In this document: positions 3,853 through 54,171 of the stretch, piece after piece
How the letters are laid out: every line of letters begins with the position of its first letter
Numbering within the stretch: the stretch's first letter is position 1
Assembly (NCBI GenBank): GCA_964036045.1
Contig: OZ038378.1
Span: 8,866,001 to 8,930,000, forward strand
Length of the DNA: 64,000 nucleotides
Source of the DNA: Eutreptiella sp. 'Long Island Sound 2002'
Lineage: Eukaryota; Protista; Euglenida
Direction: 5' to 3'
Made by a program: the position numbers and the translations under genes
The notes under the pieces: generated by a model
Database searches by the model: none
The model's input: only the letters and a program-made list of their open reading frames with translations
What the model was told of the DNA's origin: nothing

Positions 3853-3867
3853 CCGCGCATTGGCCAC

Positions 3868-13387: not shown

Positions 13388-13507
13388 CTTCACTCTCTTC
13401 AAGGACTGGACAATCAGCTTTGCACATCCCATGTTCGTGACGAGAGGTACCAAATAATCCACTGCAGCTCTGCGCAGCTGATATGCTGTGATATTCTCCT
13501 TCTTGTC
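13388..13507 (-). CDS. CPS-like exon, end of MGS domain ([40 protein letters not shown])
   Basis: Acceptor gatcattcag; probable donor GTGCTT at 13387, or read-through to the stop at 13301. Confidence 0.88.
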
Positions 13508-16500
13508 CTGAATGATCAAAGAAAGACTGGGTGAGAATGTAGATCAGCTGGCCTTCATGCGGCATACAACCAATCAGCAAAAGTGCAACAACACAATAAA
13601 TGTATGCATGGGGGACACGCTCACTCGCTCCAGATGTCGCACTGGGCCACATGCGTGTAACTCCATGCAGCAAGGCGCATGGGGAAGAGCAGCCCACACC
13701 TCACACACCCAACCCAGCAACTTGCCTGCCTGTCACTGCAGTAGCAACTTTGGCCCAACCGAAGATCTGAGAATACATGTGCCAAATGAATTTTTTTGGC
13801 TGGCAGAAAAACGCAAAATGGTGAGAGATGCCAAAACGTGCCAGAGAGCTGTGTTTTTTCAGACAAACAATGACAGGATGTGAGAGGGTGGTGTCTGGTA
13901 GTTGAGTCAAAGATTCATTTTACCATCTCAAGCATCCCTGTCCCTGACCCTACTCCTAGCCACTGAGGCACAGACCATGGTGGGAATGTTGATGACAAGG
14001 TCAATCTGGTGCTTCTTGACCAACTCAAGGGCCTTTTCTGCTGGTACCATTGTCAACGGGTAGCCCTGATCCCCGTAGAATGCTGCCGTTCCAGTGGTCC
14101 CATACAACTCGTAACCAAGGCTCTGAAGAATTTGCATATGCTCCAAGAAATCCATTTTCTGATCCAGTGGACCTGCACTAATGAGAATTCTGCCACCTGC
14201 ACAAAGATGTGAAGAGTAACAAGAGGGAAGGGGGAGACATGAAAAGGGGCAGGTAGGTTTGCCGGTCGGTACTTCTGGTTTCACACATTTGGTTGTATTT
14301 TGTGCAGACATGCCTCCAGACCGTGCACCACACGAACAAAAGACAGCAGGGGCGACACGCCTCTGTAACATTGTTAACCAGATATGTGTACGTGAGGCAA
14401 AGGCCGAAATATTACTCCAGGAATGAAGGGCTGTTGGGAAGTGTGCGGCCCGTTAATCAGCGACACTTTTGGAGCCCAGGTGCCTTGGGCTAAACTGGTT
14501 CACCACTCCATGTGTGTCTCCCCCCTTCCCAATTTTGATCAGCATGACAGCTTAGGGCACACAGCACAGTTTCCTGATTACCAGTTTGCAATGCCTTGTT
14601 TTGCGGGCTATCTTGGACGTGATGCCAAGGCCCAGCGAGGGCCAGAACAACGTGCACTCGGAATGTACCTTTGCACACAATAGGTGCTCGTAGATCAAAA
14701 AAACAAGTAATGTATGAATTACATCAGCAGGTTGTGCATGTGATATGTACACTTTTTTTTTTGTAAAATCAGTGGGACTTTAGCCTGGCCCATGCGTTTT
14801 CTGCTGGTAAATGCAAAGAGCATGTGTGTGATCAATGTACGTGAGTGATTGCGTTGCAGGGTCCAGAATCACCCGGCCAGGGAGGGAGGTAATGCACCTG
14901 CGGAAAAATGGGGAAACAGGAAAACTGGAGGGAAATTGGGGGAAACGGGGCAAATGGGGGATATGGGGGGAAATGGGGGTAAAAGTGGGCAACAAATAGT
15001 CTACATGGGTTGGCCCAAAGATAGCAATTTTTTTGGGCGACCCTTGACGACCTCCAGAAACCCTTGGGCCAAGCTTGCGTGATCAGTTCATTACAATGGG
15101 ACCACATATGCACCCATGGGGAGCCATGTAGCACCAACCAAGCCCTCCTTGTGGTGTTTATTGGGCCCTAAAAGCTTTGCACCGTGGTGGGCCTATGCCG
15201 GCAAAATGGTTGGCCTATAGCCGGCACTATGCGCCAATTGGGACCATGGTCAAATTCCACTTTATTTTTTCTGTATGGAACCCCTAACTGATGGTGGGAT
15301 GCCAGGCTGTTACCTGAATTGGCCCCTCCTGTGGGGCCCCACCGGTGAGGATGTAGCCATTTGCAGACCGGGTGACCTCCAACAACCCCTGGGAACCCTT
15401 GACCTGCATGGGCAATCATTCGGTGACAATGGAAGTACATATAACCCATAGGAAGCCATGTTACCAATTAGGCCCTCCTCGTCCTGTTTATTGGGCCCAA
15501 AAAGCCTTTTGGTGCTTGTTTGCACGGTTGCGAGCAAAACATGGTTGGCCTATAAACACCACTGTGTGTAGATCCAAACCTTGGCTGCATTCCTCTTGTT
15601 TCTTGTATGTTGACCCCTTTATCAATGGTGGGGTCCCAGGCTCTACCTCTGGGTACCCCCAAAAGCCCTCCGTATGGGGCCCCACTGGTGAGGGTTTAAC
15701 CATTTTGGGGCGAGCATGGGTGGGGTGATAAGTCGTGATTTCGCTGAGTGGCTTTGGTGCAAGCTTGGGTCATCATTTGGTGACAATGGAAATACAGATA
15801 AACCCCTGGGGAAGCACCTGGCACCAATTAGGCCGACCTATGGGGTGTCCAATGGCCTAGGGGAGGGCTAGTTCTGAGCAACATCAGCCCACTCTGGGGC
15901 CACTTGGTGGTGCATTGCTCAGGGCGATTCTTTGCAAGGTGACCTTGCCAAAAGCAATAAAATTTTCAATTTTGAGCCAAAAAAAGCTTTGTTGGGTCCA
16001 AAATCTGTGTGCACACAGGAAGTGTGGGATGTTGCGGTTCTTTGCCATTGTTGCTCACACGTTGGGATGTGGCAGCCTCGATGACCCTGTGGCATTCCCT
16101 TAGAGGGGTGAGATTGGGGATGTGGCGACAGTATACGCATGGTAGGATGCAAAAGGACACGCTTTGCAGCTTCTAGTCTTGCCAGGGGCTCACAAAATCA
16201 CTGTTTGCACTGACAAACCCCCGTTGCGAAATCTGCTGAGACAGGATTTCATCAACAACTAAAAATATTGGCCATTGTTGCTGTTGTTACAACCAGTTCG
16301 CTGCAAGGTGGACTTCCCAAAGGCAATAGCACGTGGAAATACTAACAGTAAGCATGGCGCCCTTGGGGAGCAGCAAAATCTACTTGAGAGGGAGAATGAA
16401 AGTGGAATGATGATTCGGGCATGCCAGATATGAACCTTCCGTGCACCAGGTCAGGGTGAGGCAGCACCTTTTTCAGGCAGACTGAAGCCAGTTCCCATGA

Positions 16501-19500
16501 TAGCAGTCAGGAAAGCATCATACACCTCCTCACCAAAACAGGCCACTGCCCCTGTAGACTGCATCTCAGCTCCCGCCACTGGGTCCATGCCCGCATGCCA
16601 TGTAGTTGCAAAGATGGGGGCCTTCACAGCCACATAATCCAATTCGTACGTGTTGACAAACTGGGTCTTCACCAAGCGGTCCAAGGCACATCGTGTGGCC
16701 ACACTCGCAAAATCCACATTCAGGACCTGCAGCCCAGCACAATGGCAGCACGACGATGCAGGCCCGTTGCTCATTGCTGGCATTCAAACCCCAGTCCACC
16801 ATAGCCACCGACTGACCATCAACCACTCATCAGTTGGCCACCTTTCGCCCCAAGAGAGCAGGCCTTGTCGAACTCACCTCGTTTCCTTCCAAAAGTCCAG
16901 GTGCTCCCATCCACATGCCTGTGCATTTCTCAATCCGGGAGAACACTTCTCTCGGTTCATGTTACTTCAAAACGGCCACAGTACCACAGCACAAAAGCTC
17001 TCCTCCACCACAACAGGGATACTACTGATGTACTGGGCCCGGACCTCCATGCCCCCCAACCAGTCCGAAGGGGTTTTGTGTTTCATTGTGTTTAGTTTCG
17101 TAAGCACCATTTCTGCCTCGCAGCCGCATGCGTGTGTACAGCTGGGGCAGAGTTGCACACCTTTGAGGTAAATGCCAAAGTGCGACTAGCGTAGGGGTGG
17201 AAATCCGAAACGTACAACACCGTTCCTGAGGACAGCGCCAAAGTGCATTCATGCAAGAGTCTCAGAAGACACAATCAGCCCTACACATCACGCCGGAGAG
17301 ATATCAAAAAAGATGTTTGGTGACGGGGACACAAACAGAGGTGCGGCCTCAGACGCTGTTGTAATTGCAAGCGGGCGCAGAGTGCCACAAGAAATGGGAG
17401 GTTGCAGACTGCTGTCAAGTGTTGTTGCCCAGTGGTGACCCAAAGTCGGTGCTTCCCGTTGATTGACGTCGGTTTGCGTCGTGACTGCCGTACTGTTCAA
17501 CTGCGACGGATTTCAGGCTTCCTGCCAGAGTATGCGTGATATGAACAACAGCGAGGGGTGAGGTCGTGCACCAGGGGCCGAATTCTCGCGTTGCCCAGTT
17601 CCCGTTCTAGGTATAGGTATCGTAGAGGACATGCGAAGTGACCACTGCAAATCAGGTCAGGGTAGTGGCTCAGCCTTTAGGTGATGCTGCAAACACTACT
17701 TCATGTGGACACGGCCAATGCCATGCACAAACGATTGCTGCAGACAACCAGAGAACGGAAATACCTTTCTCAAATATGTGCATTTTGAATGGTCCATTGA
17801 TCTTCAGAGCTGATGCGAGCTGATGAGCAATCTTTTCAATGCGGCGCCCAGTCTCGACACGGACCTTCTGCGCGGGCAACACCAGTGTAGCATCGCCGGC
17901 ATGAATGCCTAGGAAAAGGGGGCCAGGTTTCAGATTGGCACTGGGCTGCGTGGACACATCCCAGGAGCTGGTGTCAATTGCACAACATCGGGACATGCAT
18001 CCCGAATCATTGTTAGGCCTCTGCACAACGGAATTCAGCGTTGTTGAGTATACACACCCGTCTTTTCGACGTGCTCGATCAAACCAAATACAACCACACG
18101 ACCATCACGGGCCACAGCATCCATCTCAATTTCCTGCAATGAATAAAAAAGGGGGGAATACAATCAAGACACACGAACGATGTGGGCGTCGGGGAACTGT
18201 AGCTGCAGGGCTCGCACATCCTCCTGTGCGCATTTTGTGTATTCACCCGAATTACCAGGTTGCTGCTCTAATGTATCTGGTATTGTTCCACAGGATCAAC
18301 AGCAAAGCAAAAACTGCCTTGATATACTCCACGGGGGTTGCTCAGGGCACATACCTGAGCACCTGCAAGGATCTCAATGACCATCATTGGGAACTCCTTG
18401 CTGACCACAGTGCGAGACAAAAAGGCGCCGAGCTCCTCCGGCCAGTACACAATCTGGCGCTTATCCTCCCTCATTGAGGGCTGCACCATACAAGGATACC
18501 CAATCGCTTTGGCAGAGGCCATTACAGCTTCATGGGACTCCACAAGTTCCCTGTGAAAGAGAGTTCAAATGCAGCAGCCACATCTAATTCCATTGCAACG
18601 GCAATACATAAGCACACATCAATGCACTGGGCAGAATTACCAGCATGAGGGAAACAAATAATCTTTGGCTTGCATGCCTGCTAAATGCTTAGTGTGTCCT
18701 GCCATAACCTCCTGTCTTCTCATATGCAAGCAGCCCAAAACAGCTATTTTTTGGTGATATTTCTTAGAAAAATTTTGTCGCCAAAAGGGGGGGTTGGGGG
18801 GGGATTCCCCCCACCTTGTATCTATCACTCTACCAATAGCTGCTGCACTAGAGACACGCCCTGGGCAATTGTACACAATGCTGGCCTCTGCAGGCTGTGG
18901 GCATTGCGCAGCATGCCCTGCGGGGTGACTCTTGGCCAGATCATGCCTTGGCCGATGATGAAAATCTTTTGCACATGGCATCCCTTCCCCCCATGAGTCA
19001 TACTGCTCAGAATGACCCCTCAAGTATCTGCCTGTCTTTGCTGTTGGGATCCCAATCCCTGGGGAGGGATAACATGATGTTGTGCCATGTTTCATGCCCA
19101 CACATGCCTGTTCAGCGCGACATGGGGAGCATCTTGACAATATATTTTGGGTTACCTGTGACCCTCGCCCCCTCTGCTGACAACTGTCCTCCTCTCGTTT
19201 ACCAACATACGTCACTGAATGTGAAGCCTGCTAGCACTGGCAGGGGAGTGGACACCCAGTGGGCAGACTGCTGCAGTGGGACAGACATTCCACTCTCACT
19301 GAACCCCCCTCACCCCCACAATCCCCTAGAACTGACCTTGATCAACAAGGAGGTCATACAAAAACCACTGGTTGTACTGTAACTGGAACTGCCAGAACTG
19401 TACTATTGCCACTGTCACCATCACTGGTGGAGGAATCTGCAGAATTAACCCCAACATTGGCAGTTACAATATCCTGCCCTGTAACAGCAATTCATGCAAA

Positions 19501-20479
19501 CACTGAAGCCACAATATCCTGCCAAAAACATCAGGTCACATCTGACAATTGATTTCGGTCTCAGGATTTGGAATTTCCAACTGTGGCCCCTTATAAGTAT
19601 TGTGACAAGTCAGAAAAAACAGACCCCCCCCCCAGTGGCGCCAAAATTCTATTGGCTTCGGCAAGGCACCTCAAAAAGAGACGACTAACTGTTGGCCAGA
19701 GACGTCCTTGGGGGCAGGGAGGGGTTTCAGTGGCCAATGGACCGGGTTATATGGGCCTAGCGGCCAATATGTGGGTCCCCATGGGTGCTCAAGTACCCAT
19801 CTTGTCGCCAAATGACCACCCAGACCCATCCCAGGGGCAACAGGAGGGTTTCGCAAAAACCAAAATTCCCAAAAATTTTCAGGTGCCATCAAACAACTTA
19901 AACACAGCAATTTCAGGGCTTTCTGGGGGGCCATGGCCCGGGCTACATGGGCCTAGTGGCCACTGTGTGGGTCCCCATGGGTGCTCAAAACCATATTGTC
20001 ACCAAATGACCACCCAAACGAATCCCGGGGGGATTGAAGGGTTTTGGAAAAAGCCAAATTTTCAGAAATTCAGGTGCATAACCAGCGCAAACACTAGCAA
20101 TTTGGGTTTTCGGGGGCAATTTTGGGGGGCCATGGCTACATGGGCCTAGCGGCCACTACGTCGGTCCCCATGAACACTTGAGGACCCGTATTGTCACCAA
20201 AGGACCACCCAAACCAATCCTATGACCAATTGTGCACCAGATTGGTGCATTGTCCCCAGTGGTAGATGCACTTGCCTACACAATCAAAGAGGTGGGTTCA
20301 ATTCCCGCCATTGGAAGTTGTTGGGGCGCTTTTTTTGGCCGAAAAGAAACAGTCAGCGGTCGAGCAGTATAACACTCACCCAACATTTGGCCTAGCGTCG
20401 GTTCGAATCCTGGCCAGCGACCGAGATGATTTTTGCAGCCAATTTGAAACGCGAAGTTTCCCACGAGCTTGACTAGCCG

Positions 20480-20555
<76 letters not shown>

Positions 20556-23500
20556 ACCGGATTTCATGCCAACACGGAGCGTTTTCAGGGGTTGGTGCCT
20601 TTCTTGCCTCATTTGTGCCCGCTGACTGTCCCAAAGGGGGGGGTATGTGGGGTATATTTGGAAAGCCCTTGAAAAGGGCTATTTGGAACACCTGGGTTCG
20701 CATGGTGTACTAGCGACATGTTTGAGAGGTTCGTCCGTTTTGGACAGCATGTGTACTGCCTGCTGCCTCTCTTTGTCAACAGGCAGCTACTATGTCTATA
20801 TACAAATTCACGCAACGTGCTGTAGCGTCCCCTGACGCACCACAAAAACCTTTGGTGCGCAAAAGGGCTCGCTCTGGGGGTGCAGAGTGGGTGTGTGTGA
20901 CTCGGGGTCCTGCCAGGCAAACGCAAGGTCAGGCTCACCAAACAACGGAATGTCGACCTCACAACAGATGGTCTTTGGGCAATGCCTCTGAATTCAGGGT
21001 TGGTACCGGTAAAGAGTCGCAGGCTGCAGGATTGGCAAAAGCTGAAAAAATATGTTCTAAACAATAAGCATGGTGATGTTTGCCCAAATGGGGTCCCAGC
21101 CCTGCCTGAAAAAGACAACGCAAATGATGATTCGGAATAAGCGAGTGTGACATATTCAGTGCATGTTTGCATGCCGGCTTTGCAGCAGCCCGGGGGTCAA
21201 AACTCTGAAAGACCGAAAAGTTTGGCTTCAGTACTGAAAAATATGGTCAGCTACCCCCCTCTAACCCATACATTTCTGAAACAGCCTTTTCTCACAGATT
21301 TCAAAAAGTATACACATACCCCCCCCCGACAGAATGAAATTTTGGTGCTTTGGACAAAAAATTGAGAAAAACCTGAAAAAACACGAATTTGCTCCGCGTT
21401 GGCATGTTATGAATGTCCCCGAGAGATATAGCCACTAGACTAACCATGTATTGCTGCAGCTCACATACAAAGTGTGGTACATCCATTCTATTGGCCGAAT
21501 TCCGAATTTCTGCAAACATGCACTGCAGGCACACCGTGGTAACGCCCTACTACACGGGAGTACTTCCCCCAGGGCTATGGCACGTGAGGCAGTGTGTCCA
21601 ATCCCACAAACCGCAGCATTTTCAATTGTGGCATCAATATTTTCATTTCCCAAAAGACTGTGAGCATTTTAAAGTATTGTTAAGGCATGTGAATGGCATT
21701 TTTGATTCCAAATGTACATGAAATGAAATTTTTGGCGCCTTCACAAATGGGTGGTAGCAGGTAGGTTTGCTGCAAAGGCTGAGTAAATGTGCCCGTTGGG
21801 ACTTCCCGATGTACGCACAAATAAATTGCTTACATTGGGGAAGCGGCCGGGGAAAATACTTTTAGTCAGCGAGAGTAGGATATCCCTCTATTACCTCTAC
21901 CATTCATTCTCTGTGGCACCTCTCACACACGAATGCTGCCTCTGCCCCTCAGCATCCCCCCATGCCAATGCCGGCATGCTTCACCTTCAGCCATTCCCAT
22001 GACAGTGAGAGTGCTCACCACTACTGATGTGGGAAATGTAATGAGCGATGCGCAACATTTCCAAGCATTTTGCTGTTGGGTTTTGTTTTCACATCCATGT
22101 GGTGTTCCAACAGCAACGGCATTTAGATGGCATCACAGCTCCATAGCAGTGATCAAGGGCGGATTGGATCTACCCAAAGAGGGGGGAGGTGGCGGCACTT
22201 GGGGGGGGGGGGGTTGGCATGAAGCCTGGCTGGATTGCTATGTGAGGCCAGCNNNNNNNNNNNNNNNNNNNNNNNNNNNNNNNNNNNNNNNNNNNNNNNN
22301 NNNNNNNNNNNNNNNNNNNNNNNNNNNNNNNNNNNNNNNNNNNNNNNNNNNNNNNNNNNNNNNNNNNNNNNNNNNNNNNNNNNNNNNNNNNNNNNNNNNN
22401 NNNNNNNNNNNNNNNNNNNNNNNNNNNNNNNNNNNNNNNNNNNNNNNNNNNNAATTTCCAGATGGTTTCAGGTTCAATTCACCGGTATGTCAGAGAAATG
22501 GGTCCGAGACCGTGTCTACTTCGTGTTTTAGCCTCTGGTACCTGCGCTGCGCTGCACTGTTTTGTCGTGCACCCTGCCCCATGTTGCCTTTTTGCCCCTC
22601 CCCATTTCCTTTGCACATTTTGTTTTCAAGTGACCACCACAATGTCAAAACGCACAGCCACAGGCCCCTCCGGGTAAAACAGTGCCCGGGATAACCAAGT
22701 CCTATTCATGGAGGTGTTGCCACGACGAAGACCGAATCATGCGTCGCCGGTTGCCCTGCTTTTGCAGCAAGTGTGTCGCGGGAGATTGGGATGCATGCAA
22801 AAATGCCCTAGTTTCTGGGCCTTGGGATTCTTGTAAAGTTCGCGAAAAGGCATCCAATGCATCCCAAGACTCCGAATGTGCTTCCCAAGCATCCGATTTG
22901 TCGGACATGTCGGACGATTCGTGTTTTGCATAAATCTGCTACCACCGTCCACATGCCCTGTCTGCTCGTACTGCCCTCCAGAGCGAAATTTTTGATGGTT
23001 CCGGCCATTTTTCTCAAAAATATGGTCACCTACCCCCCCCCCCCCCCAACCCATACATCTCCGAAAAGCCCTTTTCAAGGCCATTTCAAAAAGGTATAAT
23101 ATACCCCCCCCTACGAGACACGTAGCAACGGGAAAAAGGCCAACACTGGCAAAAATCCATCAAAACCATCAATGACCCCCCCCCCCCCCCGGTTTTCGGA
23201 CATATATATACCAGAGGCTAAAAACACGAAGTAAACACGGTCTCGGACCCATTTCTCTGACATACCGGTGAGTTGAAACCTGAAACCATCGGCAAATTAA
23301 AGCCATTTCCAAGGGCTTTCGGAAAAATATACACATACCCCCCCTATCGAACAATATTTTTGCGCCCCGGACCCGAAACCATCAAAACCACCGAAAAGGG
23401 CCAATGACCCCCCCCCCCAGGTTTTCGGACATATATATACATATATATCTCTCGGCATCATCGACTGTTGCGCCAACTCGGTGGGTTTTCGGAGGTCGGT

Positions 23501-44500: not shown

Positions 44501-47500
44501 CCACTGGTCTGCCGATCTCCCTCCTTGTAAGTTTTCGGCAACACCAGATGCCTCACCAAACAGATCATCCGGTGGCAGTCCCATCGCCTGCAGTAGTACA
44601 ACCCCAACTACAATAATTTGTTCTATGCACTGCGCGCGCTCCTTCACTGTTTTCCTGAAAAGCTTTTCTCTTGCAGAAATCACTGCCACTCTGAATATTG
44701 TATACATAGCAAACTTGCAACCTTAGATCCACACACTACCATCTTGTGGGACTGCAGAGTTATACAAGAGCGTGAGTGCCTTGGATACTTCAACAACATC
44801 ACCCCAACCAGCATCATTAATGACATGTGGGAATCTGTACAATGGATGGCTACAGACGTTGTTAGAAGCCTGCACAAGGATCATACAGCCTTAGAATGGG
44901 GTGCCAAAAGGCATTAGCCAATGGTTCTATGATTTGGAACACTAGACCTTGAAACACTAACCCTAACCCTAACCCTCACCATAAAAGATGCCACTGGCCA
45001 CCATTCTATCCCTCTTTGTGACGGCTTTGGTTGGTTACTCTGCCGTACAACCAGTGCCCAATGCTCGAGGTCATGTGTGTTTGGGACTGGGAAAGGAAAA
45101 TGCACTTTTGTGGGGGACAGGGGGATGTTCGCACACCATGCTGCAGCATTACTGACCCCATGGCGTCCACTCCCCTGCCGGTACTGGCAGACTTCACATG
45201 CAGTCATTCCCATGATTTTGTCACCTATCCATACCAAGGGGGGGCATACGGACCTTCCACCCTGCTCAGTGAGTTGCCTTCACATCTCTGACAGATATAT
45301 GTACGTCAGATTTTTGACTGCACTACTCGAATGCATCTTGGGACTGAACTTGGCCCGTCCTTTCGTACATCCCTCCTTTTTCTTAACTTGTCTGCCATAA
45401 AAGCACCAATTGGAACACTGTTGATAACCACCACTGCCCAGGAGATTCCTCCCCATGACCATGTAGTCTGACAGGAGCATCTCACGTTGAAAAGTGTGTG
45501 AAAGCATGGCTGTATGGAGGTCCTTTCCATGAAGCAAAAAACCACCAGAGCTGCAAACACGGGGGGTTCCAGCCACAAACTCCATCCAAAGAAATTAGGT
45601 TTTTTTTCGGTTTTGATTCAGCAGCTGCCAGGAAATGGGGATGTGGTACCTCCTTGTCCAGCATGCGACCGCAATCCAGTGCCAATTGGCCGCCCACTGC
45701 CAACACAATGGAGTCTGGACGCTCCCTCTGAATGATCTGCTCCAAGATGGATGGACGGACTGGCTGAAAGTAGACCTTGTCCACCTCATGCTTGCTGGCC
45801 TGCACACTGGCGATGTTCGGGTTCACCAAAACCACCGAAATCTGGGCTTCTCGCAGGGCTCTGATTGACTGAATGAAATTAAGGACGGTCGAAATTCCAA
45901 ATCGTCAAAATCCCCCCAGGCTATGGATTGCTATCGGATTGCTGGGTAAACATGAACAACAACCAGTTTGAAGCCTGAAACATTTCATGCCAGCGCCTGT
46001 TGCACTGCTCTGGATGTCTTGCCGGCCCCTGTCCCAGTATTAAGCGCCATCAATGTGCAGGTTGATGCGGCGACCAGGGAGGAACCACAGGCAGATCTCA
46101 CCTGGATACTGCGCCGCCCCTACGCCTACCTGCCCCCCGGTGAAGTACTGGGATCACTGCCAGCTGGCCCCCACAGACCTGCAGGAGTGGCTGCAGGAGC
46201 AGGCAGCGATCCCTGCTCAGGTACACTACGAGCATTGATGGGGGACGAACTACCGCTGCATCCCAGGCCAACCCCCCATGGCAAACCGAGAAATGCCGTC
46301 AAAAAAGATTTTCAAAGGGTTTCGAAACATCCTTTGCCCCCGCCCCCCCCCCCCCCCAAAATCACGATGGTCAGACGGGTATCACAACAGACGGGTGACA
46401 CAACGCCGTGCCTAAACCCAACTCATGGGCGAGGAGGGATACCCAGTCTCTTTTGCCTGGCTCATTTCGCCCTTTCTCTGTTCCCTTCACCACAGTGTGC
46501 GGTATGCCTTGAGGTCCATAGCACAATGACCCCAACCCCTGCTAGCGGTCATCATGGGTGACCCCAAAATCCAATTTTTCAGCCTTCACAAACGGGTGCA
46601 TATGTTGTTGTTGTTGGGGGGGGGGGGGGGAGGCTGCCTTAAAGGCTGAGAAATAGTGCCGGTTGGTACTTCCGAATGTATGCACTGGTTTGCGTGTTTT
46701 GAATGAAGAGAGGGGGGCGGGGGGGGCTAGGTCTCTGGGATGGTGCACTTCTACTCATATCGCGGGAGAGATGAAAATGCAACAGCAGACACGGAGAAAC
46801 GCTATGCACTTGGCAATTGGCAAGGGTGCGAACCTGGCATCCAATGGCATCGTGCTGGCCTGTTTCCCCGGTTGACACACCGGGGGAGCCGATAACCAGG
46901 GTCTTGCGGCGCAGATTGTTGCGGAGAACTGGCAGCGTATACACTCGCAATGGTCTTCCTGTAAAGGTCAAGATTGGCACCAACACTGCCAGCACTTGCA
47001 ACAGCCTCGCTTACAACGCTTTTTCTCGCTCTTCCAGAGGGACACAATGCACACTCCATGAAATCCGCCTCAATGGGAACCCAGGAAACACGAATGCTCG
47101 TATTGTCCACGGGCGCGCACCGTCGGTGACCCTGGCGAATCCCAAAGGAATGGCCAGGCGGCTCGGATCCAATGCCCTCTGGCACGACCCCGTGGCGTCA
47201 GACCTGTCTGCCAGTCCTCAACTGTGGCCCTGAGGAACCGAGAGCTTAATTCCACACAGGGCCAGGGTTGCGGCGTAGCCGACAGTTTGCGCCGCGTTAT
47301 TCCCAGCTGAGGCCGTTGGTTGTCTGTGGACGCGGCCTGTAAGTGGAAGACACTGTTGCAGGTCGCAGATTGGTATTGAAACGGGCCCGGGGAGCGAAGT
47401 GGAGCGCTCTGCTGCCAGCTCTCTTCTTTGACGCCCCTCGGATGTGGGTGTCTGCTCGTGTTCCACCCTTCTGGGGCCTGGCCCTGTCCTATGGAAACCC

Positions 47501-50500
47501 CGAGAACTGCGTGGGAGATCCTACACACACACAGTGCGGGGCTCGCAGGAGCCGGCAGCGGACAGCTGATCATGGGAGGGCTTCTTGGTGTGTGTTGGGG
47601 GGGGGGGGGGGGCTACCGACCCCCTCGAGTGCCCGTGTGGGGTGTTGGAGGAATACCGGGACAGGATTCTTCCCTCCCCTTGCAGCCCACAGTAGGCAGG
47701 GCGCTGGCGGTGTGTATGTACGCTTTGCGCTGTTGCCATGAGAGAAGGCTGGGATAGAATCACCGATGCAAATCAAAGGGTGCCGCAAGGTCGGTTAAGG
47801 ACGGCGACGGCGGCGATCGCAACCTTGATCGGGAACCTCGAAACGGCTTCGTAAGAGGGAAACCCTTTAGCAACCGGACTCTGCCCTGACGCAACTCCCG
47901 CTCCGTTCACACCTACGACAGTGTCCATGAAATGCCTCAAAATGTAATCGGTGTCAGTGGGGCGGGCATCGGACCCAGGCATGAACTGAACCCCTTGGAA
48001 TGGCTTGGTCAAATGGCAAATACCGTCGCTGGTGCGGTCGTTCAAATTGAGGAACAATGACTTCCAATCTGCAGCAAACGCGAGGACAGGGGGTTTGTGC
48101 TTCAGCAAAATGGAAAGACGGGGTCAACATTTGGAAGAAGAGAGTGAAAAACATGAGGTGGTACCGGTACTGCGACTCATAACGGAAGAAGGACCAAGAA
48201 CATGGAACCAACCATCTGTCTGCCTGCGGTGCTCGGTGCAAAAAAAACAACCCAAAACTGGGCATAGTGTTTTGCCTGAATTGATACCAATGAGCTGATA
48301 TGGTCCAAAACGCCCAGCTGAGGGACCCATTGTGAAACCAACACGAATTGGTGCTACATCGCTCCTCGTGGGGTTGTGCGCCCTCCCCTGTCAGCAAATG
48401 ATGACCCAAGCCCAGCCTAATGCTCCCTAGGGCATGTTGGGGTCTACCCTGAAATGGTGACCGTTCAGCCCACTCATGGCGTTGTGAAACGGGCTAAACC
48501 TTCACCAGCAGAGCCCCATAGAAAGGCTGATCAGGTAACCGAAGATAGGACCCGGCACCCACGCCACCACTTTAATGGGACCTGGGTCTCGGACATGTAG
48601 CAGCTACAATAGGCCGGTAACATGAAATACAAACCCCCAAGGCTGGGTCGTTGCGTCAGACTTCTGTGAGTTCCTGTGCTGTGTCACCAGCAAATATGAT
48701 CCTCTGGGCTGTGGTTCTTCGTGGCAACAACTGGGTTAAGATATGCCCGCTCAGGTCTGACTGCAGTTGCCCTTCATGCTGCGCCGGCTCACTGGCGGCT
48801 CACTGCTGTATGGCCTGATAGATTTAATGCTTAATTCGGAAGTGGAAATTTTGTAGAATCCTTGTTTTGTCCAACAAAGTATCCCCCAATGCGTTTGTTG
48901 GGGAAGCCATGCAGCACCAGTCAGGCCCCCCCAAGCGGTGCCCATTGGCCTTTGAGAGGGCTGTTCAGGTTCTGCACCACGGTCGCCAAAACGCCATGCG
49001 TCCATGCAGAGCCAGACCCGAGAATATTTTTTTGCTTATGGACCCCTGAACCAATGGCGAGGTCCCACCCAACCCCCAGTCCCGAGGGGCATGGGTTGGC
49101 TCAAAAATCACCTTGCAGATGTTGTTCGATCAACACCAGCCGGGCTGCAAACATGGGAACCCCCACCTACCCCCCCCGCCTTTTGGGGCCTACTCCCATA
49201 CCACAATGCGAACACTTAAATTGTGGGTTAAACCGCTGCACAACCTTTATTGTTATTTTTGTGAACAAAAATATCCCCCCATGGGCTTCTGGTCAAAGAC
49301 ACCCCAAAACACAAGCCCCCCCTCAATTTGCTCCTTGTCATCCTCTGGCACATTTAGGGTCAACAACTCATCTGATTGGACAAATTCAGTGTACTCCAGC
49401 AATACAGACTCCAACCATTATTCAGAGGGCTCCAACCCTGAATGGTGCCACACATGCAGTACAGAAAAAGTCAGTCCCAATTCACCTGCAGCAGTCATGT
49501 CCGGGATACAAGGCACAGCCACTTACCCAGTCTCTCATCAGACTGCAGCTCGTAGCGTTGGTGTGGGTTTAGGTGTTCCCATTGTTTCTTTTGGCCCAGG
49601 GAATCTCTGCAGTAGCAAAGCTATGCAGCAGCAGTGCACATTGCACACAGATAGGTCGAGAAAAGGGCGTGTGCAGTGTTTCGCAGAAATGCGGGCCTGC
49701 CTCATTTTGATGGGCGGTTGGATGAAGGTCCAAAAATCGACCCATGATTTTTTTGACCTCACATCACAAACCAGAGGTTGTGACCGCCCGTCCCATCCCT
49801 CCAAACATGGGGTACCTGGTTTCGGTTCCGGGGTGGGGTGGGGGGGGCTTTGTAACTGCAAAAAAAAAAATCGGGACTTTTTTGTCTTATAATTTAATGA
49901 TATTACGAACAAAAACCCTGGAGATTTTACTCCTTCGGGTATGCTTGGGATACCGCCCAAAACTGCACATGTCGCTCAGGCCTGCCCTCTCTTCAGGGTG
50001 ATTCAGGTACAAATATCAACTGGGTCCCTCGAAGCAGTCGGGCTTGTACAAGGGGTTGGCTTGAGACCAGGAAGGAGGGCGGTTCAGGGGAGTCGCTGTT
50101 GCGCGCAGTGCACCAACATCGAAACTTCACACTGATGGCTTGCTTGCATTCACGGTTATGATTCATAACCTCGTGATTCCGGATTCCAGGAGCATATTTC
50201 TGGTGTTTGCTGTTTGCCCACGCATCCATCCATATCTCCCACCAACGAGGGAAATGCACAACCTCTCATGAAAACTTCCTACGGTCGCCAGGCTGACCGT
50301 TCCAGGGCGCCCCTCGCCATACATATCATCCTCTGCAGCTTTCATGGAGAGCATGGCCCAAGAACAGCCATGGACCCTGCAGTCTCCAGAGGACAAAGGG
50401 AGCCCACACCACAGGTTCAGATGCCGCTTCCCATGCCGTCCACATGCCCATCCGCAACGGAGGCCCAATATCAATATCCTGCTGCTGGAAACAGAAATGC

Positions 50501-53500
50501 AATCCCACCGCTTGCCATGCATCTCCGACCCCATCGCACTCTCCTGTAGGCGCCCTTGTCACCTGCTCCAACCTCACACTGCAAGTAACTCTATAGCATT
50601 ACAAAACTAGATAATGTTTACAGATGCAGGTTGGTCTTCTGGGATGGTGATAAAATTGGGGATCGTGGCACAGCGGCGTTGGGCAACCAGGAGCAAATAC
50701 TTCGTGGTGCCAGGTAATGAGGAGCAAATACATGGTGGCACTGGGGAATAAAGAGCAAATGGTTGGATGGCAGTGTGGCAAAGAAACTACACGGAAAATA
50801 TAGCCTTTCAGCACCACAAGATGAGAACATCACCTGCAGGCAGAGTGTCCGTATCGATCTCGTAACCATGGTTCTGTGGGGTGATGTAGCACTTGCCAGT
50901 GCGTAAATCCATGCAAGGGTAATTCAGGCCGCGGTTACCTCTCTTCATGGGCTTGATCTTTGCCCCAGTCGCCAGAGCTATCATGTTGCAGCCTGCAATG
51001 AGATCAGTGTGGCGGATAAAATACGAAAGAGCAAACGACCTGCTTCAGCGAAGGAACTCAAGGGTGTCAAGGAAGGCGAAAGAAGAGCGCACATTCTTGG
51101 ACTCCTCCCTCCCCAGCCGTGCACAGGGGTTTGCAGTGGGGAGGCGACTTCTCATGCGAAAAATGAGATGGGTGGTACAAAGAGACCATACCCAAGCCAA
51201 TGCCCATGATGGGCTTCGGGGGCTCCAAAGCTAGTGCCCGCTTCAAGTTGTTGACTGTTGCTTCACAGAGGCTTGGATGACAGTCTGGCCCAGAAGACAC
51301 CAAGAGCCCATCCCAAGGCTCAGAGAAGATATCATAATCCCAGGGGACGATACGCAGGCGTATATTGAAAGACATCAGGAGGCGGATGAGAGTATTGGAG
51401 ATTCCGCAATCGATGGCCATGATACGTTTCGCGGTCTTGGCATTGAAATGAAGCGGCCTGTAATATGTACCACCAATCGAGCTCTCGGGCATGAGGGCAC
51501 AAACCATTCCGTGGCGCGCAAAAAAAAAACAAACAAAAGCGACCAAGACAAGCAATGGCCATCGCAGCGGACGGCAAAAATTCACGCATGATCACAGAGT
51601 ACAGGCACCAAAGAGGGGGCAGAGGCCTCCCAAACCCACAAATAGGGTTGCCATGGGGCCCACAGTGGGTCATGGTCCTCGTGCACTCGAGATTCGACAG
51701 TCGCGTTTTCTGCACTTTGGCTCTGGAAACCGTGGACATTCTGCTAGAGTCCCCTGCTGCAGAGGGGGGGGGGACCGTGACATACCAAAAAAGCGATGCA
51801 GGCGTCCTGACCAAAATCCATGACGCAAAATGAATGGGGTATCTGCACCATTGAATTTGCAATCAATTACGAAACGATCAAAATCATGTTCATCTGCAAC
51901 TGCAAATCCACCATTCACGAATTCATGGCAGAGATTGAGCAAATGGCATGTAGTGGTCATACTCGGGATCGAACCATCCCATGGCTTGCTGTTGCTGTGC
52001 GGAACGCGCGACGGCATACCTGAAATCCCGCGCGCCAGTGCATGAAACTTCTTTTACCAGGTTCCGGTTTCTGCACTCATCAAATGCGATATCGCCGTCT
52101 TCCACAACCACTTTCCCCTTCATCTCACCCTTGTCCCGAAGCCGTTTGACTAGTGCGCGGGTATCAATGCCACAGAGCCCTGGCACCTGAAGAACGCACG
52201 CACAGGATGAATGTAGCAGAAAGATTTCGTCGCAGGAACCTTCCCCTGTCGTTAGGGAGTAGGTTTACACCCTCCCACATCTGCAATTCCCCGTGCATGG
52301 GCGGTTGAGAGCATTCTAGGGCCTCGTCCCGGGCGAAAGTGAAAACGGCGCGGTCCTCCATAACACGGCGCAACCGAGTGCAGTTGCCCCGCGACGGTGT
52401 CCGCAAGCAAAATCTGAACCTGCCTCATGGGTGCGATGGAAGGCGAGCGTGCATACCCCATTCTCTTGCAGCCACCCATCCAGCGAACGTACGGAGTTGA
52501 AATGCGAATATCCGGTGTGATGGTTGGAGAGCACCAGCGCACAAGCATGGATCTTATCGGACTCGAAATTTTTCTTCAATTTGTACAAATCCACAACGTC
52601 CGAGGGCACTCCATTGTTTGCCTGCGATGCGCGTTAGGGGGTGGGGGAAGGGGCCAATTCAGATGATTGATCGATTACGTGAGAGAAATGATAAACCAGC
52701 AATAAATAGAATTGAGGCAATCCACGGTCTGGAGGGGGTGGGGTGGGTGGGCTCTCGCGTTCGTGGACGCAATGCCCAGAGTGATCCAGGTTCCGTGACG
52801 ACAAAATGGCAGCATAGGCCTTCAATCAAGGTTGCAAGGGCACATGAAACCTCATCAATTCATGTCATGCTTGCCACACGGCAGAAGGACGGCACCAACC
52901 TCGCAACTCGGGACGGGTGATGGTGAAAACGCCGTTGGTCGACGGTCAGTCGTTTGTCTCCCTTGATATGCAACACCCACAAGCATTGAGAGACCAATGT
53001 GCACATTCATCACCGCAGGCGGAGGGGCGAAGGGGGTATTTCTTCGGGAAATGTGTTGCATGCTCGCGGACTTCCCTACTTCACTGGCATGGGTGGCATG
53101 ACCTTCACGACCCAGGTGACGTGGTTTCATCATGATTATTTGCTTGAAAAAAGACAGTTGATACGTGTGCGTATCTAAGAACGATTATTTCGGGGTGGTC
53201 AAAGCGGAAGGGCCAGAGTTAGCCCAAGGAGAAAGAATTAGATCCCTTCCGTGCCGGGGGGTCAAACGGTGCGGATTTCCACAGGGTAGAAACAATGCAG
53301 CGCGGTTGCGTCGAGCTCCGAACGGTGGGGGAAAATATCGTTCTAAAGTGCTGGGGAGGAATAACCAACTCAACCCTCCATGTGGCACCATTCAGTGCAA
53401 TTATTCACTGTCTGGCCGCGTTACAACCTCTATCTTGGTCATGGCACCGGGCCACGACAGAAGAAGGCCTACCTCAGGTGGAACGCAGTCCGCCACCCAC

Positions 53501-54171
53501 AGTTTTGCCAAACTACCGCACTGCGTTCAGGTGACTTGGTCTTTACTCCCAACATTGTGTGGGTTTCACTTGGTCGCGCGACGAGGTCTTGTTGGAGAGT
53601 TGACCCGGTTTTTGAAAAGTTTACTTCGAGCGAAAATTGAAGCATCGTTAAATGTGGCAAGTGATGTCACGGTGGCCAACTCGGTTTGTCACGTCATTTG
53701 CCACGCCATATTTCATATTTTATGTTAAAACGTAAGAAACCGGTACGTCTCATTTGACCCAGAAGGTGAAGAGGGTGGAAACCATTTCGTGTTGAAACTT
53801 GAATGGTCTTGCGGCAAAGCAATCATCACCAAAAGTAGAAACACTCACCGTGTGACTGCAAGGGGTCAACTGCCGGGCAAGCAGAAGGTGCATTGTTGGC
53901 AAAAAACTGAAGATGCGACCGAACTAGGACGAGCGACTGGGACAATTAAGGACTTGGGAAGGGAGAAAGGGGTGCTATACCACAATTGGGTAGGCCAAAG
54001 CTACCACTTGCCCGGCATACATTGGATCCGTGAGAGACTCGGGATGCCCCAACATGCCGGTGTGAAAAACCACAAACCCGGATACGTTTGTCAGAGCACC
54101 GAACGCCTCTCCTTCATAGGTCGTTCCATCTTCCAAAACTAAACGTCCCCTCCGCATTTCCCGTAGTGAGC
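13388..54171 (-). CDS. CPS: Multi-exon fused carbamoyl-phosphate synthetase-like protein (CarA-like GATase + CarB-like synthetase + MGS domain); catalytic residues degenerate
   Basis: 22 exons (listed separately) join through GT-AG introns with matching phases, except across the unmapped 33246-18551 interval. Recognisable CPS motifs in order: [118 protein letters not shown]. The 5' and 3' ends and about 230 central residues are unresolved. Confidence 0.93.
13976..14196 (-). CDS. CPS-like exon, MGS allosteric domain (RILISAG...LYGTTGTA...[10 protein letters not shown])
   Basis: Acceptor ctttgtgcag, donor GTCTGT, 221 nt, phase 1 to 0. Confidence 0.92.
14900..15950. repeat. Dispersed repeat family with diverged internal tandem units
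   Basis: Recurrent GGGCCCCAC(C/T)GGTGAGG, TT(T/C)GGTGACAATGG and CACCCATGGGGA; the inverse complement occurs at 19700-20230. Confidence 0.65.
16468..16726 (-). CDS. CPS-like exon ([11 protein letters not shown]...VAVKAPIF...[12 protein letters not shown]...TGFSLPEK)
   Basis: Acceptor gctgcag, donor GTGCTG, 259 nt, phase 0 to 1. Confidence 0.92.
17161..17225 (-). CDS. CPS-like exon ([22 protein letters not shown])
   Basis: Acceptor gtcctcag, donor GTGTGC, 65 nt, phase 1 to 0; aligns to LKVIECNLRASRSFPFVSK. Confidence 0.88.
17765..17908 (-). CDS. CPS-like exon ([14 protein letters not shown]...[14 protein letters not shown])
   Basis: Acceptor cttttcctag, donor GTATTT, 144 nt, phase 1 to 1. 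Confidence 0.92.
18058..18133 (-). CDS. CPS-like exon ([25 protein letters not shown])
   Basis: Acceptor ttcattgcag, donor GTGTGT, 76 nt, phase 0 to 1. Confidence 0.92.
18355..18550 (-). CDS. CPS-like exon, second ATP-grasp B-subdomain (ELVES...[10 protein letters not shown]...VSKEFPMMV...AGAQ)
   Basis: Acceptor tctttcacag, donor GTATGT, 196 nt, phase 2 to 0. Confidence 0.9.
19700..20230. repeat. About 195-bp tandem repeat (about 2.5 copies) of the same family, inverted relative to 14900-15950
   Basis: ATGGGCCTAG(C/T)GGCCA recurs at about 19751, 19947 and 20141; TTGTC(G/A)CCAAA recurs. Confidence 0.8.
20245..20481 (+). mobile_element. tRNA-derived SINE-like element
   Basis: A-box-like CCCAGTGGTAGA, B-box GGTTCAATTCC (20295-20305), second B-box GGTTCGAATCC (20401-20411), followed by (CT)n. 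Confidence 0.5.
20482..20552. repeat. (CT)n microsatellite, about 35 units
   Basis: Read directly from the sequence. Confidence 0.99.
20636..21327. mobile_element. MITE-like non-autonomous element with G-run terminal inverted repeats
   Basis: Left GGGGGGGGTATGTGGGGTATATTTGGAA; right reverse complement GGGGGGGGGTATGTGTATACTTTTTGAA; left part homologous to 23520-23640. Confidence 0.6.
22253..22452. other. Assembly gap (200 N placeholder)
   Basis: Exactly 200 N. Confidence 1.
22453..23345 (+). mobile_element. Non-autonomous DNA transposon with long TIRs and a Cys-rich transposase C-terminal remnant (Sola2-like)
   Basis: About 90-bp near-perfect inverted repeats at 22453-22540 and 23209-23298 (the left one runs into the gap); internal frameshifted peptide [11 protein letters not shown]...[10 protein letters not shown]...CKN...GPW (22680-22830). 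Confidence 0.65.
23990..24430. repeat. Low-complexity coding-like repeats (CCATC(A/T) hexamers and 33-36-bp units), probably a TE relic
   Basis: The minus strand reads GDGDGDG/EEEE and (TRG...TA)n with an internal stop. Confidence 0.7.
25590..28261 (-). mobile_element. 2672-bp TIR DNA transposon (CMC/EnSpm- or Transib-related) with an intron-containing, disabled DDE transposase
   Basis: TIR CCCTTGGTACACGCTAGAAGACCCAAT(C/T)TCGTTCTAGCCTAGA at both ends; flanked by AG on both sides (2-bp TSD); subterminal GCTAGAAC repeats. Transposase ATG 28049, exon to 27321, intron 27320-27203, motifs [21 protein letters not shown]...[18 protein letters not shown]; stops and a frameshift in exon 2. Confidence 0.85.
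30588..31406 (-). other. Intronic hypothetical ORF (Thr-rich linker plus helical/globular part), probably TE-borne
   Basis: 272-codon ORF with protein-like composition after the T-rich stretch; no recognisable motif. Confidence 0.35.
32380..32640. repeat. Diverged about 50-bp tandem repeat (4-5 copies)
   Basis: Recurrent GGGGAGAAAT(C/G)AATATGGCTAC...AACCC...GGGGTCCCC. Confidence 0.75.
33247..33330 (-). CDS. CPS-like exon ([28 protein letters not shown])
   Basis: Acceptor gtgttgcacag, donor GTATGT, 84 nt, phase 1 to 1. Confidence 0.9.
33993..34089 (-). CDS. CPS-like exon, oligomerisation domain (EEKQ...[18 protein letters not shown])
   Basis: Acceptor gctctctag, donor GTATGT, 97 nt, phase 0 to 1; matches the PTDKRIF-type motif. 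Confidence 0.88.
35458..36204. mobile_element. MITE-like element with CAACCCAGCCCCCAAAT inverted ends and subterminal AAATCGGCG repeats
   Basis: 35458-35480 is the reverse complement of 36181-36204; AAATCGGC repeats cluster near both ends. Confidence 0.65.
35697..35768 (+). ncRNA. tRNA-like (degenerate) Pol III-type cassette, probably a SINE head rather than a functional tRNA
   Basis: GGCGGTAGTATAGTGGTA...CTGTAA...GGGTTCAGTTCCC followed by a T-run; acceptor and T stems do not pair properly. Confidence 0.4.
36379..36586 (-). CDS. CPS-like exon (IPCY...[22 protein letters not shown])
   Basis: Acceptor tttcttttgcag, donor GTTGGC, 208 nt, phase 2 to 0. Confidence 0.9.
38255..38445 (-). CDS. CPS-like exon ([26 protein letters not shown]...[10 protein letters not shown])
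   Basis: Acceptor ccttcgcag, donor GTATGC, 191 nt, phase 0 to 2. Confidence 0.93.
38780..38933 (-). CDS. CPS-like exon ([15 protein letters not shown]...[17 protein letters not shown])
   Basis: Acceptor tttcttgacag, donor GTATGT, 154 nt, phase 2 to 0. Confidence 0.92.
41067..41155 (-). CDS. CPS-like exon ([30 protein letters not shown])
   Basis: Acceptor catctctcag, donor GTAAGC, 89 nt, phase 0 to 2. Confidence 0.92.
42845..43156 (-). CDS. CPS-like exon ([14 protein letters not shown]...NRDRF...LGYPV...VEKSLQ)
   Basis: Acceptor ctgctgtag, donor GTGTGG, 312 nt, phase 0 to 0. Confidence 0.93.
44957..44980. repeat. Short interstitial (CCCTAA)n telomere-like repeat, about 4 units
   Basis: CTAACCCTAACCCTAACCCTCACC. 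Confidence 0.6.
45650..45868 (-). CDS. CPS-like exon ([23 protein letters not shown]...GGQLALDCG)
   Basis: Acceptor tttcattcag, donor GTACCA, 219 nt, phase 0 to 0. Confidence 0.93.
46834..46958 (-). CDS. CPS-like exon, start of synthetase ([25 protein letters not shown])
   Basis: Aligns to [24 protein letters not shown]; acceptor cctttacag, donor GTTCGC, 125 nt. Confidence 0.85.
47913..48068 (-). CDS. CPS-like exon, end of GATase ([11 protein letters not shown]...GVQFMPGS...HFMDTVV)
   Basis: Acceptor tttgctgcag; phase-1 donor GTGTGA chosen to match the next exon (an alternative phase-1 GT lies about 48 nt further on); HPE motif reads MPG. Confidence 0.85.
50834..50992 (-). CDS. CPS-like exon, GATase domain ([10 protein letters not shown]...GNRGLNYPC...QNHGYEID)
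   Basis: Acceptor ctcattgcag, donor GTGATG, 159 nt, phase 1 to 1. Confidence 0.92.
51192..51457 (-). CDS. CPS-like exon, GATase domain (AIDCGISN...SSGPDCHP...IMGIGLG)
   Basis: Acceptor tattacag, donor GTATGG, 266 nt, phase 2 to 1; the nucleophile Cys position is Gly. Confidence 0.92.
52020..52186 (-). CDS. CPS-like exon ([24 protein letters not shown]...NLVKEVS)
   Basis: Acceptor gttcttcag, donor GTATGC, 167 nt, phase 0 to 2. Confidence 0.92.
52457..52621 (-). CDS. CPS-like exon (ANNGVPSD...FESDKIHA...LDGWLQENG)
   Basis: Acceptor catcgcag, donor GTATGC, 165 nt, phase 0 to 0. Confidence 0.92.
53981..54171 (-). CDS. CPS-like exon: small-subunit N-terminal domain ([15 protein letters not shown]...AYPIV)
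   Basis: Acceptor ttctttgttgcag, donor GTATAG, 191 nt, phase 1 to 0. Confidence 0.92.

Follow-up and report, generated by a model that had tools for sequence, protein, structure and literature searches.

The minus strand of a 64,000-nucleotide stretch of the genome of the euglenid Eutreptiella sp. 'Long Island Sound 2002' (assembly GCA_964036045.1, contig OZ038378.1, positions 8,866,001 to 8,930,000; hereafter the window, in which all coordinates are counted from its first nucleotide) encodes a homolog of glutamine-dependent carbamoyl-phosphate synthetase (CPS) in which key catalytic residues of the glutaminase site and of both ATP-grasp sites are replaced. This protein (P0270; 1463 amino acids (aa), encoded by a spliced coding sequence (CDS) of 4392 nucleotides (nt)) is likely to be a full-length, expressed, selectively maintained and catalytically dead paralog of the euglenid enzyme that was born by duplication of a euglenid CPS. 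Judged from its sequence, it is a member of the CPS homologous family that lacks the enzyme-defining residues at all three sites, and it is a pseudoenzyme by the loss of these residues combined with mRNA expression and purifying selection. We infer that the protein makes no carbamoyl phosphate and works without catalysis.

Gene structure, assembly gap and transcript

When the Escherichia coli CarA and CarB sequences (reference sequences from NC_000913) were compared to the window using tblastn, a collinear series of weak-to-moderate matches was obtained between 54157 and approximately 14000 of the minus strand. With P0270 as the guide, the gene resolves into 26 coding exons, all on the minus strand, with exactly one GT-AG solution for each of the 25 introns. 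The genomic CDS shows no mismatches to the CDS of the JGI metatranscriptome contig L004, and the three mRNA contigs L004-L006, which come from three JGI samples, are approximately 100% identical to the exons and skip every intron. The P0151 protein matches the window exons residue for residue, and its full-length cluster mate P0270 begins at the ATG at 54157. A preliminary description of this locus had presented an intact gene of 22 exons and about 1220 codons within 13388-54171. The count stands for that interval (exons 1-15 and 19-25, 1216 codons), but the gene as a whole is larger and is not complete there: exons 16-18 are hidden in a run of N, and exon 26 with the stop codon (12599-12507) had been missed.

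Residues 857-1073 of P0270 have no counterpart in the window, even in a tblastn search of the region 33.2-18.5 kb with very loose settings, because the window does not contain their sequence; L002 (ENA contig ctg10763), part of a second assembly of the same organism, does. The N run (22253-22452) lies in the interval where these residues belong. Positions 1-7545 of L002 correspond to window 29990-22453 with 99.9% identity, and positions 11882-20270 correspond to window 22252-13864 with 100% identity; L002 is thus collinear with the window on both flanks, and the 200 N stand for 4336 bp (L002 7546-11881). The three exons inside this stretch (exons 16-18; L002 8441-8640, 8843-9041 and 9975-10224; 216 codons, aa 857-1073) encode exactly the missing residues in frame, namely the end of the oligomerization domain, the second pre-ATP-grasp domain and the start of the second ATP-grasp domain, and are also present in mRNAs L004-L006. 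Exon 19 is covered by an RNA contig of X1 (X1 and X2 are culture RNA runs, X4 is an estuary metatranscriptome, and X8 and X10 are DNA runs), the loose end of which, at 18551, continues into sequence of exon 18 that the window lacks; DNA contigs, in turn, extend into the gap from 22252. Both sides of the gap are continuous except for the unassembled 4.3 kb, and the reading frame is kept. The gap flanks are very high-copy repeats with word depth from thousands to 64,000, compared to 20-30 in single-copy sequence, which explains the assembly break. This case shows that a 200-N placeholder can conceal 4.3 kb of sequence and three exons.

Several observations on the introns accompany the gene model. 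In the gap-bearing intron, the segments 19482-21451 and 23028-23618 show word depth of 5,000-64,000 in X8 and X10, compared to 20-30 in the single-copy neighbors, and short pieces of these repeats are also found in the RNA runs. Repeats internal to L002 beside the gap are 93% identical (L002 6693-6782 and 7455-7695 versus window 22453-22540 and 23209-23439). Introns 9 and 10 are moderately repeated (39202-40036 and 41540-42708; X8 depth of 50-400 versus 27), and a 274-aa open reading frame (ORF) at 41844-42668 has no Pfam match. The introns had been described as filled with transposable elements. Very high-copy repeats are indeed present, but no transposon protein domain was detected by Pfam search in ten long ORFs of the introns and flanks; with no Pfam family in the scanned ORFs, the transposon attribution derives from read depth alone.

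The mRNA is mature, spliced and trans-spliced to the spliced leader at approximately 54171. Contigs L005 and L006 begin with TTTTTTTCG, which we take to be the 3' tail of the spliced leader of euglenids, joined to GCTCACTACGGGAA-ATG; the joint is at 54172/54171, 15 nt upstream of the ATG, so that the 5' untranslated region (UTR) in these two mRNAs spans 54158-54171 behind the acceptor AG at 54173-54172. Contig L004 continues past the trans-splice acceptor into the upstream genomic sequence (54172-54311); it is a precursor still without the spliced leader, whereas L005 and L006 carry the leader tail. According to the mRNAs, the 3' UTR (10339-12506, minus strand) runs from 12506 to approximately 11562 and, after an intron, from approximately 10766 to 10339. 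The ends of this intron vary among the three mRNA contigs, with the donor at approximately 11577 or 11562 and the acceptor at approximately 10760, 10766 or 10745. Exons 9-12 are spanned by single RNA contigs in X1, X2 and X4; the joints, 42844/41154, 41066/38932 and 38779/38444, lie at the predicted sites and all read CT..AC in plus-strand orientation, equivalent to GT..AG on the strand of the gene. The DNA run X8 covers exons and introns equally at approximately 27x. Finally, tblastn comparison of two active euglenid CPSs to the window revealed nothing CPS-like outside the 26 exons (best E-value 0.17), and therefore no alternative exon in the locus can restore the lost motifs.

Replacement of the catalytic residues

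The residues were compared in an alignment that combined E. coli CarA+CarB with as many as 21 active fused CPSs of bacterial, protist and animal origin and with four dead sequences, namely P0270, two further sequences linked to Eutreptiella and that of Euglena longa; the first residue table included 13 active CPSs, and invariant columns were counted over 21 active sequences plus E. coli (22 in total). Every canonical catalytic residue that was compared is invariant in the active set. E. coli numbering is used throughout, and the starts of the reference motifs were verified in CarA and CarB (GICLGHQ at 267, HPE at 353, RPSFTMGG at 169, GIHTGDS at 241, EMNPRVSR at 299, RPSYVLGG at 715, EVNPRAAR at 841, and NVQ at 283 and 827); the string CNVQF, which had been quoted as the E. 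coli motif, is absent from the E. coli sequence. Of the eight divergent motifs listed in the preliminary description, six are located within single exons at exactly the places given there, and two, noted below, cross exon junctions and are present in spliced P0270.

In the glutaminase site, Cys269 is replaced by Gly in the terminal GIGLG of exon 4 (51192-51457, aa 170-259), with the motif GIGLG|CN crossing the junction to exon 5 (50834-50992, aa 259-312), which encodes a further part of the glutamine amidotransferase (GATase) domain. His353 and Glu355 are replaced by Met and Gly, respectively, in the QFMPG motif (47988-47974) of exon 6 (47913-48068, aa 312-364). The triad of the orthologs reads Gly, Val/Ile, Gly, compared to C, H, E in all active CPSs included. 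Cys269 and His353 are essential residues (PMC6245113). Exon 7 (46834-46958, aa 364-405) carries the family-specific sequence GSPG..GETGQHD in place of GSG..GQAxEFDYSG.

In the first ATP-grasp domain, exon 9 (42845-43156, aa 479-582) lacks Arg169, which is replaced by Ser in SVSQVLEGG (42967-42941), and the Gly-rich loop 175-180, which reads E-G-G-R-Q-Y. Exon 11 (38780-38933, aa 612-663) contains VLSQDA, in which His243 is replaced by Leu (the motif G|VLSQDA crosses the junction of exons 10 and 11), and CHVRF (38815-38801), in which Gln285 is replaced by Arg; exon 12 (38255-38445, aa 664-727) contains TVWTSLSG (38430-38407), with Glu299, Asn301, Arg303 and Arg306 replaced by Thr, Trp, Ser and Gly, respectively. 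Arg169, His243, Gln285, Glu299, Asn301, Arg303, Arg306 and the Gly loop belong to the carboxyphosphate site, with roles that we take to be those derived from E. coli structures and mutants. Exon 10 (41067-41155, aa 583-612) encodes a 30-residue block in which 27 of the 30 positions are invariant in the dead family.

The second ATP-grasp domain is affected in a similar manner. Arg675 is replaced by Pro. Exon 19 (18355-18550, aa 1073-1138) contains QPSMRED (18483-18463), with Arg715 replaced by Gln and the Gly loop lost. Exon 20 (18058-18133, aa 1139-1164) retains Glu761, His781 and Glu783, and exon 21 (17765-17908, aa 1164-1212) retains a 13-residue stretch that includes His788, followed by KMH, in which Gln829 is replaced by His. 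In exon 22 (17161-17225, aa 1212-1233), DFHPYASR (17205-17182) shows Asp, His and Tyr in place of Glu841, Asn843 and Arg845, with Arg848 kept. Arg675, Arg715, Gln829, Glu841, Asn843 and Arg845 are ligands of the site of carbamate phosphorylation; the ligands lost from the two ATP-grasp sites include those of ATP and metal. Glu215, Glu761, His788 and Arg848 are retained.

Thirteen of these positions (Cys269, His353, Glu355, His243, Glu299, Asn301, Arg303, Arg306, Arg675, Arg715, Gln829, Glu841 and Arg845) are replaced in all four dead sequences, whereas Arg169, Gln285 and Asn843, all replaced in this protein, are still present in one or two orthologs. Most of the lost site positions carry differing residues among the orthologs, and the three dead lineages share the same residue at only 5 of the 20 canonical site positions, compared to 47% of all columns; the catalytic positions are therefore now among the least constrained ones. 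The 22 active sequences have 269 invariant columns in common; 141 of these are retained by every one of the four dead proteins, whereas at 74 all four carry a replacement. In 30 of the 74 replaced columns, the dead lineages share one new residue. These shared replacements convert the Gly loop 175-180 to E-G-x-R-x-Y (G175E, G178R, G180Y) and also include D238Y, R675P, E25Q, F26H and E916A. The segment GQAxEFDYSG became GETGQHD in the dead family, and the signature motifs of this family are absent from all others among the 437 proteins compared. Glu25, Glu604 and Glu916, which presumably line the carbamate tunnel, are all replaced. The phosphate pocket of the allosteric domain is kept (equivalents of Lys954, Thr974, Thr977 and Asn1015); Thr977 and Lys993 have been assigned to the UMP site (PMC6245113, from which the domain limits also come).

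Domain architecture and predicted fold

All eight CPS domains are kept. The domain order identified with Pfam in exon translations and in the full proteins is the CPSase small-chain N-domain, class-I GATase, two halves, each consisting of a pre-ATP-grasp and an ATP-grasp domain and joined by the oligomerization domain, and a C-terminal domain similar to methylglyoxal synthase (MGS-like); the GATase and synthetase are fused, without aspartate transcarbamoylase (ATCase) or dihydroorotase (DHOase). The small-chain N-domain starts in exon 1 (53981-54157, aa 1-59, ATG at 54157), which is followed by exons 2 (52457-52621, aa 60-114) and 3 (52020-52186, aa 115-170). The first pre-ATP-grasp domain is encoded in exon 8 (45650-45868, aa 406-478). 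Behind the first ATP-grasp site come exon 13 (36379-36586, aa 727-796), exon 14 with the oligomerization domain (33993-34089, aa 797-829) and exon 15 (33247-33330, aa 829-857). The C-terminal part consists of exon 23 (16468-16726, aa 1234-1320), exon 24 with the MGS-like allosteric domain (13976-14196, aa 1320-1393), exon 25 (13388-13507, aa 1394-1433) and the coding part of exon 26 (12507-12599, aa 1434-1463 and the stop codon).

The AlphaFold2 (AF2) model of residues 370-1463, for which an alignment without the E. coli CarB row was used, retains the CPS fold (mean pLDDT 82, pTM 0.85) and superposes on human CPS1 (5DOU) with a TM-score of 0.89 and on E. coli CarB with a TM-score of 0.88. Model confidence is low in the former nucleotide-closing loops (model positions 175-181, 242-246 and 730-733), in the GETGQ stretch and in two insertions.

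Orthologs, selection and origin of the dead family

When exon 9 (106 aa) was used as the phmmer query against 1.8 billion representative sequences, one match stood out, P0001 (1436 aa, E-value 2e-34); all other matches were ordinary CPSs with at most approximately 40% identity. A word-index search with P0001 delineated a dead family of three clusters, P0001, P0151 and P0152, with the remaining hits being normal CPS or CAD proteins at approximately 40% identity. P0151 is labeled Eutreptiella gymnastica (UniRef), P0152 Euglena longa (EukProt) and P0274 Eutreptiella; P0001 is an unlabeled cluster mate of P0274, to which it is 88.5% identical. Two fragments from two NCBI assemblies, P0017 and P0043, show 57-63% identity, and P0043 has the dead-type loop. 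A scan of metagenome contigs with the dead-family alignment (patterns CDMENLY and CKIDRWF) produced 80 loci, all of which encode ordinary CPSs of approximately 30-33% identity, and thus neither an additional dead family member nor a closer pair of DNA sequences for dN/dS. The same dead state is maintained in orthologs from at least three euglenid lineages. The P0001 contig, L003, retains a 1.2-kb intron (750-1985) after the first coding exon, the other 4.2 kb of the CDS being uninterrupted; it is a partly spliced transcript.

Comparison of the window CDS to that of L003 over 1411 codons by the Nei-Gojobori method gave a proportion of synonymous differences (pS) of 0.76, which is saturated, and a proportion of non-synonymous differences (pN) of 0.30 (dN 0.38; 57% aa identity). 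Non-synonymous change is therefore far below the saturated synonymous change, and this comparison sets only a bound on dN/dS. The chance that a random sequence of this composition contains no stop over 1463 codons is approximately 5e-31, and four sequences stay open. Identity among the dead proteins is 47-72% by domain and is highest in the small-chain N-domain and in the first ATP-grasp domain.

In the maximum likelihood tree (LG+G4), the dead clade is supported at 100/100, has a stem of 0.99, and is lodged inside the euglenid CPS clade (100/100), where its sister group consists of the active Entosiphon, Eutreptiella and Euglena CPSs (95/92). By this placement, the duplication is specific to euglenids and older than the split of Eutreptiella and Euglena; the apparent position of the duplication before Entosiphon may be a long-branch effect. 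The distance between the dead proteins of Eutreptiella and E. longa is 0.69 substitutions per site, compared to 0.24 between the active proteins of Eutreptiella and E. gracilis. The dead CPS of the window groups with P0152 of Euglena longa (100/99) rather than with P0274 and P0001, so that either the taxa are deeply split or mislabeled, or there are two old dead paralogs.

The active euglenid paralog

An intact CPS, P0348, was found with the active E. gracilis CPS (P0333) as the query; in EukProt, it is a Eutreptiella protein of MMETSP0809. P0348 has all the tabulated catalytic residues, and JGI sample 3300042019 contains both its mRNA (contig L007) and the dead mRNA L006. Another candidate for the active CPS of this organism, P0153, was rejected given that the tree places it outside the euglenid clade. 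Like the dead protein, the active euglenid CPSs (P0348 and P0333) are fusions of GATase and synthetase of nearly the same size (1466 versus 1463 aa); they form the sister clade with 45% identity to the dead protein but possess the catalytic residues that the latter has lost. The active CPSs are 84-89% identical between genera, whereas the dead proteins are 55-64% identical. Neither P0348 nor P0270 has a presequence ahead of the first CPS domain, and it is plausible that the two proteins share a compartment.

The core reading of the preliminary description, an intact CPS paralog under selection with three dismantled active sites, withstands every refutation test named there that can be run in silico: a transcript exists, no alternative exon restores the motifs, non-synonymous change is far below the saturated synonymous change, orthologs retain the dead state, and an intact paralog is found under the same taxon label and in the same sample.

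Possible functions

The preservation of all eight domains, the bulky residues fixed in the first nucleotide pocket and the kept allosteric pocket suggest that the function needs the whole CPS shape. Among the mechanisms compatible with such a requirement, we tentatively prefer, while holding it to be somewhat short of an even chance, a role analogous to that of the trypanosomatid prozymes, in which the dead protein would be a partner of the active CPS. E. coli CPS forms dimers via the regulatory domains and tetramers via the oligomerization domains (PMC6245113); given this self-association, a dead chain could replace one protomer. The dead chain would pair with the active CPS through the same surfaces of the allosteric and oligomerization domains, and such pairing might tune the activity, stability or effector response of the active enzyme. 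The retained allosteric phosphate pocket may still bind a nucleotide effector. A more specific proposal, that the protein is an obligatory regulatory subunit of the euglenid CPS (a 'CPS prozyme') that senses a nucleotide effector via this pocket, is speculative and less likely than not.

Several observations weigh against these conclusions. The second ATP-grasp site retains Glu761, His788 and Arg848 and, in this species, has Asp and His at positions 841 and 843, so that residual metal or nucleotide binding may persist there. Because dS is saturated, dN/dS is only bounded by the relationship of pN to pS. The oligomerization and allosteric domains are the least conserved ones in the dead family (47-59% identity), which is a poor fit with a conserved interface in these domains. 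Furthermore, the active paralog is linked to this organism by transcriptomes that share its taxon label and sample; its gene was not located in the assembly studied here.

Nearly as likely as the prozyme-like role is that the protein serves, without catalysis, as a scaffold for or regulator of proteins that are not CPS, either in a CAD-like assembly of ATCase and DHOase or through unrelated moonlighting. Inactive DHOase-like proteins are structural parts of pyrimidine enzyme complexes, which we count in favor of this explanation, and conservation extends over the whole multidomain architecture instead of being confined to one interface. Euglenozoa have separate genes for CPS, ATCase and DHOase, and complexes have been reported in Trypanosoma cruzi (PMC7052976). 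However, the dead protein contains no added domain or motif that would point to ATCase or DHOase binding, and the active CPS could fill the scaffold role itself.

It appears unlikely that the protein became an enzyme with a new activity or a ligand sensor, with a new site formed by GETGQHD, the Glu, Arg and Tyr of the former Gly loop, and the Tyr that replaces Asp238. The 30 formerly invariant positions with a shared new residue, which cluster at the first nucleotide site, the signature motifs confined to the dead family, and the kept allosteric phosphate pocket would all be accounted for. The new residues, however, may merely fill and stabilize an empty pocket; the metal and phosphate ligands vary freely among the orthologs, so that no common chemistry is visible at either ATP-grasp site, and no similarity to another enzyme class was seen in the Pfam and structure comparisons.

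The approximately threefold faster evolution compared to the active paralog over the same Eutreptiella-Euglena split, together with the loss of all catalytic sites, is also what a decaying, transcribed but functionless pseudogene would show. This possibility is very improbable considering that the 1463-codon frame is open in four sequences from at least three lineages with pN far below the saturated pS, that 141 of the 269 universally invariant positions are kept, and that the 25 introns are correctly spliced out of a trans-spliced mRNA. An artifact of the gene model or assembly, with hidden or alternative exons restoring an active enzyme, is suggested by the three exons concealed in the N gap and the one missed in the preliminary description, but its probability is negligible: the hidden exons are known from L002 and the mRNAs, aa 857-1073 carry the replacement of Arg675 by Pro and none of the missing motifs, tblastn with two active euglenid CPSs gave no CPS-like match outside the 26 exons, and the full-length mRNAs of three samples code for the dead protein.

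The public names of the dead proteins (P0151, P0274 and P0270) are 'carbamoyl-phosphate synthase (glutamine-hydrolyzing)' or 'large subunit/small subunit' (UniRef, JGI). These homology-based assignments are probably wrong as to function; with the enzyme-defining residues missing from all three sites, annotation as EC 6.3.5.5 is not warranted. Metabolic reconstructions of euglenids may count the dead protein as an enzyme.

Other sequences in the window

Apart from the CPS gene and its introns, the window contains a G-rich satellite with a 61-bp unit at 2406-3853 (23.6 copies, 84% match) and, 1.5 kb further, a second short array at 5364-5507. An 834-aa ORF (58846-61350, plus strand) lies at that end of the window which is GC-rich and strongly skewed. 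No Pfam family matches this ORF at E <= 0.01, although a stretch resembling RNase H ('FTDASG...E...D') can be recognized in it by eye, and a non-LTR element had been noted there in the preliminary description.

Comparison with known systems

CPS is a textbook three-site channeling enzyme. Full-text literature searches revealed neither a report of a conserved full-length CPS with a dead glutaminase and two dead synthetase sites nor any prozymes described in euglenids. CPS, ATCase and DHOase have been reported as separate genes in Euglenozoa, with no mention of a second, dead CPS (Butenko et al., 2020). Herpesvirus vGAT pseudoenzymes are likewise inactive homologs of an amidotransferase and act through a cellular active partner (PMC7605207), but these viral proteins descend from FGARAT, not from CPS, and belong to a different biology.

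Closer parallels exist within the CPS family and the pyrimidine pathway. CPS I of ureotelic vertebrates also contains a dead glutaminase domain, with the nucleophilic Cys replaced, that is kept as a structural or regulatory part; however, both ATP-grasp sites of CPS I are preserved and it is a very active enzyme, whereas in the euglenid protein both synthetase sites are dead as well. Inactive DHOase-like proteins, such as the respective domain of fungal URA2 and Pseudomonas PyrC', are pseudoenzymes inside the same carbamoyl-phosphate/pyrimidine pathway, but they have a different fold and act as structural partners of a known active enzyme, ATCase.

The trypanosomatid prozymes of S-adenosylmethionine decarboxylase (AdoMetDC) and deoxyhypusine synthase share with the dead CPS the origin by lineage-specific duplication in Euglenozoa, the loss of catalytic residues or activity in one paralog and, in all likelihood, its retention by selection beside the active enzyme. 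Prozymes are defined by heteromer formation with, and activation of, the active paralog. The dead CPS differs from them in coming from free-living euglenids and in being derived from a 160-kDa enzyme with three active sites. If the protein is indeed a CPS prozyme, free-living euglenids would share this strategy of trypanosomatids, and they would apply it to the step at which pyrimidine and arginine synthesis begin. Should the dead protein regulate the active CPS, control by dead paralogs would be older and more widespread in Euglenozoa than the trypanosomatid prozymes, and the dead family would represent a natural experiment on those parts of the CPS scaffold that matter apart from catalysis.

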